From assembly GCA_037379345.1 (NCBI GenBank), contig CM074515.1, forward strand, positions 7,564,001 through 7,628,000: DNA of 64,000 nt, given 5' to 3'. The stretch's first letter is position 1. Each line of letters starts with the position of its first letter. This DNA is from Perna viridis. Its lineage: Eukaryota. Made by a program: the position numbers and the translations under genes. Under the pieces are notes generated by a model that was not told where the DNA came from, ran no database searches, and saw only the letters and a program-made list of their open reading frames with translations. Below, in pieces: positions 53,601 to 56,600 of this stretch.

Positions 53601-56600
53601 AATGTGAATTTAACCAACAGTATGGAACATTCAGTGGTAATGGAATGATCAGTGGTAAAGGATCAGGTATGTGATGTACTTTCAGTGGTAACGAAATGTT
53701 AAGTGTTTAAAGTTTGGATAGGTAATGTACTTCATGTGGTAACGAAATAATAAGAGGTTAAGGCTTAAGTAGATAATGCACCTTTATCGGTAACGGAATG
53801 ATTAGTGTATAAGGGGCCAGGTATGTGATATTCAACCCACGGTAAAACTGAGACGCTTTTAAAGAATTGTCTGAGAAATTACTTATCCTATGATATTTGT
53901 GGTGTTCAAGTTGGTATTTCAATGCAGACATAGTTATATATATTGTCAGAAGTTGACTTATATCAGACGAACGGTGAATTTTATTATGCTGTAACAGATG
54001 AGCTGTGTCTAAATTCAAAATATGCATGTCTCCAATAAAATACCCCTTTAATCATACTGATTTTTGTTACTTTAAGTTATAACTCTACGTTTCAACTGGT
54101 TTTGTTTTTTATTTTAAGTCAGTTTGAGTAAAGACTGAGTATCTTTTTCCTGAAGAAGAGTTCGTTATTTTTTTAAGACTGGATGAAATCAAATAATGCA
54201 TATATATGTGTGTAAGACTTAAGAGTATAATAAGCTCTTTTCCAATGTCCAATGTGTGTTAACCTTCCACCTTTGTTTTAAATAGTTTTATTTCTACTTT
54301 AAGCTACTTTTGTACTTATCTTTTAGAAATGTGTTTCATGGGAATGTTTTCAACGTGGAATACTTTATAAGCGGTTTTGGACAGACAAATTAATCGAGTA
54401 AATGAAAATTCAAGAAAACTCTCCTATTATTTCAGGATATACAGTACAACCAACAGAGGCTCCATGTGTGAACAAAATTAATAACTGCGTTCAGTATGGA
54501 GCAGATATATGTAGCAATCCAGATTATGCTGGATGGGTAAAGACTAACTGCAGGAAATTCTGTAATATATGCAGTATGTATTCTAATGAGATGTGTTTGA
54601 TGTATTGATATTAAATTTAAGTATGCTGGTTTGTTTTTTACTTAAAAATGGTCTTCCAAATCTTGTATTAGTAAAGACATGTTATTGACATTCCAGTGTC
54701 ACTAAATTGTCCACACTTTTCAGAAAGGATTGGTTAATTTTCAAACATTTTATTGCTATATATTTCGTATAAAGCAGAATATTTACTCTGACAGACGTAC
54801 CAGGGCCGCATGATCTTTGTATTTACAAGGGTGTATCCTACAAACAAGGAGAAACATGGTTTGATGGTTGCAACTATGAATGCAAATGTGAAAATGCCAT
54901 TTATGGTTACTACAGATGTAACAAACGGTAAATATTTCTCTATATACCAAAATAAAAGAAACCTATGTTTTCAGACGTAACCGGGCCGAATGATGTATGC
55001 ATTTATAAGGGTCAATCTTATAGACAAGGAGATACTTGGTTTGATGGATGTGAATCTGAATGTAAATGCGAAAATGCCAAATATGGGTATTACAGGTGTA
55101 ACAAGCGGTAAATATCGTAGGTCGATAGATTAATGGTGAATGATATATCTTAGAAGCTAGTAACATGTTGCATGTACAATGTATTGGGACCCTTATACTC
55201 CCCTTTATCCTCGACTTTATGTAAGATTCACATTCTCCCTGATAGATGTAAAACGTTTGCTAGACAATCTTTCAGGTGGCTATCACCGGAATTCTAAACA
55301 TTGCAAAAGGGTAAGTTTTACACTGTTCCTAAAACAGTTTGATAGATTTAAAATTGTATTTACTTTTGGCTGTTTAATGCTTTACAGCTGTCCAGACTAC
55401 GTTAATCTTCCACTTAACTGCCAGTTTGTAACAGTACCCGGTGATTGCTGTAAGAAGGTAGAGTGTACAGGAGGTCAAGGATCTTTTGTGGGTTCATCCT
55501 TAACCCCAGGACTAATTGGTAGCCAACCTATACCAAGTAAACAAATGATTCCTTCTCCTCTACCAGGCCAACCAACTCCAGCACCTGGTCAAATTCCACA
55601 GTTGATCCCAAGCAAAGTCGGTAAGTACTGTGAAAAAGCTATTAATCTATACAGTACACTGCATAAAGTCGAGCTGTGTATAAAGTCGATTGATTTTTGA
55701 CACCTTCTCTGGTTAATGCAAAATAGCAGAAAATTCGATCACTTATTAGTTAGAAAATAATGATTTTCAAAAACTACATTGATTTATCTTTACATTGACA
55801 TAAGATATAGCCGTATACCCTCTAGACCCATTGAACTCATAAACTAAATAACTTTTTAAAACTATATCTGCAACCTGTTATTTAGAACATTTGTAACAAA
55901 ATTCTTTAATCCGAAATTATGATTTTTTAACTATGTGATATCTTTTTGAACTTCTCTTAAGTTAAAGTACCATTTTCTTTTTAATAGCTGGCTGTTATGT
56001 AAATGGATCTTTATACCAACAAGGCCAGAGATGGGTTGTTGGGTGCGATTTGGTTTGTAGATGTGACGATGCTTCCGCTGGTCGTTACAGATGTGATCCT
56101 AAGTAAGCCTAGTTATAGGTTATAGTTAACTTCCTACGCAATTGATAAATAAGTATATACTAAAGACAACCCATTCTTTGACTATTGGATTAACTTTTTT
56201 TATGTCCACTGTGCATTGTTTTTTTTTTTCTTGAAGAATGATTTGTTTTGTAATGCATTAGTTTACTTTAAGTTGTTATTCTATTTGATATTACGAACAA
56301 TTTCTTTGTTCTGCAAAAAAAGCAAAACATTGTATCAATCTAACATAAAGAAAAAGTTTGCTCTCAATTTCATCGGATACAAACTTTGAATATCAACTTT
56401 AAACATGAGCAGATGTACTTGGTTAACGCATTTTGATTAATTTTGAACAAAGATGTCCAGAGTTCCAAGGACTTCCAGCTTCGTGTACGTTGGTCGAAGA
56501 TCCAAACGATAGATGTTGTCAAATTCCAAACTGCCCAGCAAATGTGAATGGACAAACACTCATTGTTCCAGTTCCGCAATATGGCCCAGGTTTCTCTGGT

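Follow-up and report, generated by a model that had tools for sequence, protein, structure and literature searches.

Results

Organization of the exon pair

The window, i.e. the whole stretch of Perna viridis DNA analyzed here (64,000 nt, with no N bases anywhere), contains on the + strand a large gene that occupies 32.5-64 kb and runs past the window end. Within this gene, two exons of identical length, hereafter A and B, lie in tandem between two constitutive exons:

54436-54573, + strand: constitutive upstream exon with the ShK domain; its last base is base one of a split Asn codon, and its donor serves A and B
54574-54794, + strand: intron 5' of exon A, 221 nt, GT..AG
54795-54927, + strand: exon A, 133 nt, encoding the predicted first half of the third VWC domain; reads N-V-P
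54928-54974, + strand: spacer of 47 nt between the donor of A and the acceptor of B
54975-55107, + strand: exon B, 133 nt, encoding the predicted alternative first half of the third VWC domain; carries the N-V-T sequon
55108-55387, + strand: intron 3' of exon B, 280 nt; it makes up the 3' portion of the 460-nt intron spliced out downstream of A
55388-55620, + strand: constitutive downstream exon with the predicted VWC second half (CP...C...CC...C) and a Pro-rich linker

An earlier note, made from the sequence alone, had described two 133-nt exons with a CAG acceptor, a CG|GTAAAT donor, open frames and a 47-nt gap, and its coordinates and translations were reproduced exactly. On sequence reading the donors are identical in A and B (CG|gtaaat), and the acceptors, preceded by ctgacag| in A and ttttcag| in B, are both AG with short pyrimidine tracts. 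The two exons also share their phase, since each takes one base from the exon ending at 54573 and leaves two bases for the exon starting at 55388; a script check given the carried-in base found the reading frame open through A and through B. At the nucleotide level 27 of the 133 positions differ (106/133 shared, ~80% identity), and outside the exon the similarity is confined to 3 nt on the 5' side and 8 nt on the 3' side, giving 144 nt at 81% in the repeat search (family D3). At the protein level 9 of the 45 residues differ (36/45 shared, ~79-80% identity). These substitutions are mostly conservative (K/R, E/D, L/V), and all 5 Cys, the Trp and the Gly are conserved in both exons. Our script returned the same nine differences with the 5 Cys and the Trp kept as the earlier note, and the many synonymous changes that it had mentioned amount to 13 codons. 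The sequon that it had placed across the junction is likewise limited to B, which reads N-V-T-G where A reads N-V-P-G.

The exon length is 3n+1, so that an mRNA with both exons or with neither would be out of frame, as the earlier note had claimed. According to a local script, the frame stays open with A alone or with B alone, a stop is reached 5 codons into B when A and B are joined, and a stop follows after 14 codons when both exons are skipped. Read-through of either donor gives an immediate TAA; because both donors read CG|GTAA, intron retention would terminate the protein precisely where the exon ends.

Host gene and VWC domain

The host gene is collinear with the gene of the abalone protein XP_071091672.1 (Haliotis; P0005), a 2,067-residue "uncharacterized protein", with exon identities of 50-80%; like its Haliotis counterpart, the host protein is uncharacterized. 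The Haliotis ortholog is laid out as four VWA domains, TSP1 and ShK (Pfam), then VWC units. The full-length Haliotis protein gave no Pfam VWC match at E <= 0.1, its single units resembling VWC. All domains of the host protein are of extracellular types, and the B-only sequon would thus lie in a predicted secreted protein.

From ~50.8 kb the gene is made of a string of cysteine-rich units, each split into a first-half and a second-half exon. A tblastn search of the window gave two first-half exons (A and B) and one second-half exon for VWC unit 3, while the other VWC units in the gene have one first-half and one second-half exon each. The exon upstream of the pair (54436-54573) matches Pfam ShK above the cut-off (E = 4.6e-07, 30.7 bits). 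When searched alone against Pfam VWC (PF00093), exon A matched positions 1-32 of 57 (E = 0.004, 17.8 bits) and exon B positions 1-31 of 57 (E = 0.003, 18.2 bits), both below the gathering cut-off of 27.6 bits, as expected for half a domain only. Whole-domain homologs exceed this threshold over positions 1-57 (P0028 with 38.4 bits, P0034 with 32.6 bits), and residues 58-124 of the family member P0027, a homolog and not A/B themselves, match the CCN3/NOV VWC structure 5NB8 (E = 8e-06). The unit has a ten-Cys pattern split 5 + 5, A and B each carrying 5 Cys with G-x2-W and the second-half exon carrying CP, C, CC and C. From its sequence, the unit containing A/B is recognizable as a VWC domain, and the claim that a VWC half-domain is toggled agrees with the matches of A and B to profile positions 1-32 of 57 and with the whole-domain homologs.

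Two side observations concern the surroundings of this unit. Three 51-nt copies are arranged in tandem at 53627-53779, with identities of 100, 73 and 67%. The first of them spans the 3' end of the preceding VWC second-half exon together with its donor; loose ends of RNA show that this donor is the one used. Farther downstream, reads or contigs of runs X21, X1 and X8 cover an intronic repeat at 55755-55874; they carry numerous variant letters and loose ends, and the repeat is probably a dispersed one, transcribed elsewhere.

RNA evidence for the use of one exon at a time

The RNA data consisted of Logan contigs of three expressing runs (X1, X7 and X8) and of the raw-read run X21, in which the gene had no coverage and is not expressed. 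The contigs show GT..AG joints and therefore derive from RNA; being assembled, they lose rare variants and yield no junction counts, and they show presence, not absence. Four joints, all GT..AG, were found in them, namely 54573>54795 and 54927>55388 for A, and 54573>54975 and 55107>55388 for B. These are the four junctions that the earlier note had proposed to compare, present here as contigs without read counts.

The clearest picture came from X8, where A and B lie on separate 186-nt contigs (depth 45.2 for A vs 25.5 for B), each flanked by 25-29 nt from identical upstream and downstream exons. Such a contig pair is the bubble expected for two equal-length alternative exons, and the summed depth of A and B (~71) is near the 58-65 of the upstream exon. 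The B contig of X8 is fully spliced with zero intron coverage, and the joint 55107>55388 was seen in this run only. With A and B each joined on both sides in X8, the possibility that only one exon is ever spliced in can be set aside. In X1, A is spliced on both sides at a depth of 315, and B is joined upstream (54573>54975) at a depth of 50.6 with the 280-nt downstream intron retained; the contig in question spans 54975-55416, is the sole B-containing contig of the run, and no B>55388 joint is listed there. X1 also holds a minor form unspliced in the intron upstream of A (54544-54824; depth 17.9 vs 236-315 for the spliced form). In X7 a single 2,885-nt contig was found, with A only, at a depth of 849. 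It may be noted, as a separate observation, that in each of the unspliced A and B forms of X1 the intron holding the other exon has already been removed.

The joint 54573>54795 is present in X1, X8 and X7, RNA contigs cover 54432-54573, and those of all three runs cover 55387-55620 and continue into the next VWC exon. A is the major form in all three runs, B accounting for 0%, ~14% and ~36% of the A+B depth across the three studies. Neither an A>B joint (54927>54975) nor a joint skipping both exons is listed in any run, in contigs that drop rare variants, and the 47-nt spacer has a depth of 0 in X1, X8 and X7, being neither excised alone nor retained in the contigs. In these assemblies each messenger carries A or B, with the same flanking exons. 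The mutually exclusive use that had been proposed from the sequence is thus supported by the four joints it requires, with no A+B or skip-both joint listed.

Selection on the two copies

The comparison of A with B by the method of Nei-Gojobori gave a dN/dS of 0.076 (bootstrap 95% interval 0.03-0.29), with dN ~0.12 and a saturated dS of ~1.5. Third codon positions hold 18 of the 27 differences, and the contrast between synonymous and non-synonymous change is strong (Fisher p = 8e-8). For the introns flanking A and B, the alignment is barely above that of shuffled sequence, and most of it comes from the shared donor and acceptor motifs. The low dN/dS at saturated dS, the third-position bias and the unalignable introns together indicate that both copies have long been kept as coding sequence. 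A and B are both under strong purifying selection, which is what the earlier note had supposed when it suggested the dN/dS calculation.

The 501-nt region of the pair has one match in the 723-Mb assembly. An independent Logan contig from another read set (L003, 3,323 nt, 99.8% identical) has the same A-47 nt-B layout, and none of its 7 mismatches falls in A, B or the spacer. Beside this, position 55505 is C in the assembly and A in L003 and in all three RNA runs, a synonymous difference (ACC to ACA, Thr); the assembled individual would therefore carry a minor allele or an error at this site.

Distribution and age of the pair

Orthologous loci were found in Haliotis cracherodii (L002) and in three other taxa in ENA assemblies (L004, L015 and L016-18). 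In L002, L004 and L015, which have both flanks on the contig, the ShK exon is followed by a single first-half exon and then by the second-half exon. The contigs L016-L018 end ~0.6-0.9 kb past the first-half exon, and no second copy occurs before their ends. In Haliotis, a search for the remnants of a second copy gave nothing above shuffled controls. The likeness between A and B (79%) exceeds the likeness of either to the exons of the orthologous loci (at most 72%), and the nearest foreign exons, P0029 and P0154, share 77.5% identity with A and with B alike. A maximum-likelihood tree of the 43-residue exons had no supported branch and leaves the duplication undated. Given its absence from four orthologous loci, the pair appears restricted to the Perna viridis lineage; by the same token, conservation across species lends no support to a function of B.

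In word-indexed protein searches, exon B matched only the window's own ORF and the Haliotis region 1170-1340 matched only itself. Elsewhere in the genome there are at least 128 VWC first-half-like exons, in several large arrays:

C5: 2.69-2.74, 8.18-8.19, 18.65-18.72, 19.30-19.32 and 47.28-47.36 Mb
C9: 44.20-44.27 Mb
C11: 25.0-25.2 Mb

These arrays point to multiple multi-VWC genes in the genome. Among the 128 exons listed, no other pair closer than ~600 nt was seen on inspection by eye, which makes the A/B spacing unique among them.

An observation on the Haliotis gene model should also be reported. In the RefSeq model, the first residues of the domain (DAYLPGPN) come from a 27-nt mini-exon (L002:23980-24006) located 1.2 kb upstream, and the model enters the main exon (L002:25210-25368) at an internal CAG, skipping the in-exon NVVGSVPD. 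The version bypassed in this way has the same acceptor context, acag|acgt, as the exons of the Perna viridis window.

Discussion

Proposed mechanism

Taken together, these data make it probable that A and B are tandem-duplicated mutually exclusive exons in the gene of a large secreted VWA-TSP1-ShK-VWC protein, providing two versions of VWC domain 3. In the mRNA the upstream ShK exon would be followed by either A or B and then by the second-half exon common to both, and one gene would in this way code for two alternative N-terminal sub-domains of VWC domain 3, 9 residues apart. A would be the default form and B a variable minor form, whose usage may be regulated by tissue. The two isoforms might have third VWC domains with different binding or glycosylation properties, the N-V-T of B being a predicted sequon that could be glycosylated.

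Mutual exclusion may be enforced in two ways. The 47-nt spacer would block the joint use of the A donor and the B acceptor; it is short compared with the other RNA-defined introns of the gene (221-770 nt), and no yTnAy branch-point match was found in it. A branch point usually lies 18 nt or more from the AG. The spacer would then leave at most ~30 nt between the A donor and any branch point for the B acceptor. In human mutually exclusive exons the reported steric limit is a distance of under 50 bp from donor to branch point (PMC5740500), and in C. elegans introns under ~40 nt are not excised (PMC4165533). The spacer would thus be too short, with a donor-branch point gap below the roughly 40-50 nt limits of worms and humans. 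An intron of 47 nt may still be spliceable in Perna viridis. The second barrier would be the 3n+1 length, through which double inclusion or double skipping would produce a frameshifted NMD substrate. Competing RNA structures were considered as another possible switch. The inverted-repeat scan gave three perfect 10-mers, about chance level in 1.25 kb of AT-rich sequence; two of them pair exon B with its downstream intron, and their order is not nestable. We propose no structural switch from these repeats, since their number is no more than chance gives and they cannot be nested.

Alternative readings

It could be argued that B is mostly an unproductive side route, in which retention of the 280-nt intron puts a TAA after B and lowers the output of the gene via NMD or through a truncated half-VWC protein. 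The only B contig of X1 is of this kind, joined upstream at a depth of 50.6, unspliced through 55107-55387 and without a B>55388 joint; the retained intron gives an immediate stop, and B is always minor and absent from X7. We nevertheless find this reading unlikely. The B contig of X8 is fully spliced at a depth of 25.5 with no intron coverage, and a dN/dS of 0.08 at a dS of ~1.5, with Cys, Trp and Gly kept, reflects long-term selection along the whole of B, which is more in keeping with a folded VWC half than with a poison exon. Moreover, the unspliced upstream intron found beside A in X1 points to pre-mRNA in that library. The intron-retaining B contig could therefore be pre-mRNA or a real truncating route. 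Should the latter hold, the choice might be coupled, B slowing or blocking the removal of the 280-nt intron in some tissues and creating a three-way switch between full-length A, a full-length glycosylatable B and a truncated form without the C-terminal VWC/ShK array; this speculation we consider rather improbable.

Another reading accepts the use of both exons but attributes the choice to unregulated splicing noise between near-equivalent duplicates, with isoforms that are functionally alike. The identical donors, the two AG acceptors with short pyrimidine tracts, the mostly conservative nature of the 9 substitutions (K/R, E/D, L/V) and the lineage-restricted distribution of the pair would all fit. 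On the other hand, the share of B varies strongly among studies (0, ~14 and ~36%), and both copies have stayed intact through saturating synonymous divergence, during which a redundant copy would probably have decayed, so that we hold this to be very unlikely. That the duplicate is an artefact of assembly or haplotype collapse, or that A and B are alleles, has a negligible probability and was rejected: the pair has a single match in the genome, the independent contig holds both copies, the differences are biased towards third positions, and RNA contigs of A and of B occur within the same runs. The haplotype-collapse artefact that the earlier note had raised against its own proposal is excluded by the single locus and the independent contig. 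Tandem mutually exclusive exons thus remain our preferred reading.

Significance

An uncharacterized multi-VWC matrix-type protein would, under the preferred reading of mutually exclusive exons, be diversified at one domain through exon choice, with VWC domain 3 singled out as the site of functional tuning. Orthologs of the host protein occur in abalone, and homologs are present in other gastropods and in a brachiopod. The natural A/B pair, which differs by 9 residues and one sequon, is suited to identifying the binding partners of VWC beads. In splicing terms, the pair is an ordinary, textbook case. For mollusc annotation, it adds one lineage-restricted, RNA-supported example of short tandem exons, which are easily missed or mis-joined.

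Comparison with known systems

With regard to the domain itself, the unit resembles the VWC of CCN3/NOV (5NB8) in its 10-Cys pattern, A/B corresponding to the N-terminal sub-domain (positions 1-32). It differs in its cysteine spacing, which in Perna viridis is C-x3-C-x-C and CC-x4-C. The textbook VWC motifs are C-x2-C-x-C and CC-x2-C. A full-text search of the literature combining mutually exclusive splicing with "VWC domain" gave nothing relevant.

With regard to splicing, exons 2/3 of alpha-tropomyosin form a tandem mutually exclusive pair with a too-short intervening intron. The same arrangement is found in C. elegans for exons 9/10 of let-2 and 5A/5B of egl-15, where the introns are of 14-30 nt (PMC4165533). 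A and B share with these three pairs their adjacent exons of equal length and phase derived from tandem duplication, with one exon per mRNA, and a very short intervening intron (47 nt in A/B) that is never seen excised. The A/B spacer is somewhat longer than in the worm pairs, and the steric block is deduced from its length alone; A/B also differ from the worm and tropomyosin pairs in belonging to a mollusc and to an uncharacterized extracellular matrix-type protein. Clusters of non-3n exons backed by NMD represent 60% of human mutually exclusive clusters (PMC5740500), and 14 of the 19 non-3n clusters of C. elegans rely on NMD (PMC4165533). A/B resemble them in their 3n+1 length and in the stop met within 5-14 codons if both or neither are included. 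Unlike in those clusters, the joined or skipped forms of A/B are absent even at low level from the contigs, and the part played by NMD is presumed.

Among molluscs, mutually exclusive exons have been described for coq-2 (PMC7434440), muscle myosin heavy chain (PMC3912159) and Biomphalaria TEP (PMC7016707), and these cases belong to the same splicing class and phylum as A/B. The coq-2 and myosin heavy chain switches are described as common to several animal groups, whereas A/B is absent from Haliotis and the three other loci, and A/B differs from the three mollusc cases in sitting inside a VWC domain. The pair is therefore best seen as a classic tandem-duplicated mutually exclusive exon design, in a phylum in which mutually exclusive splicing was already known.
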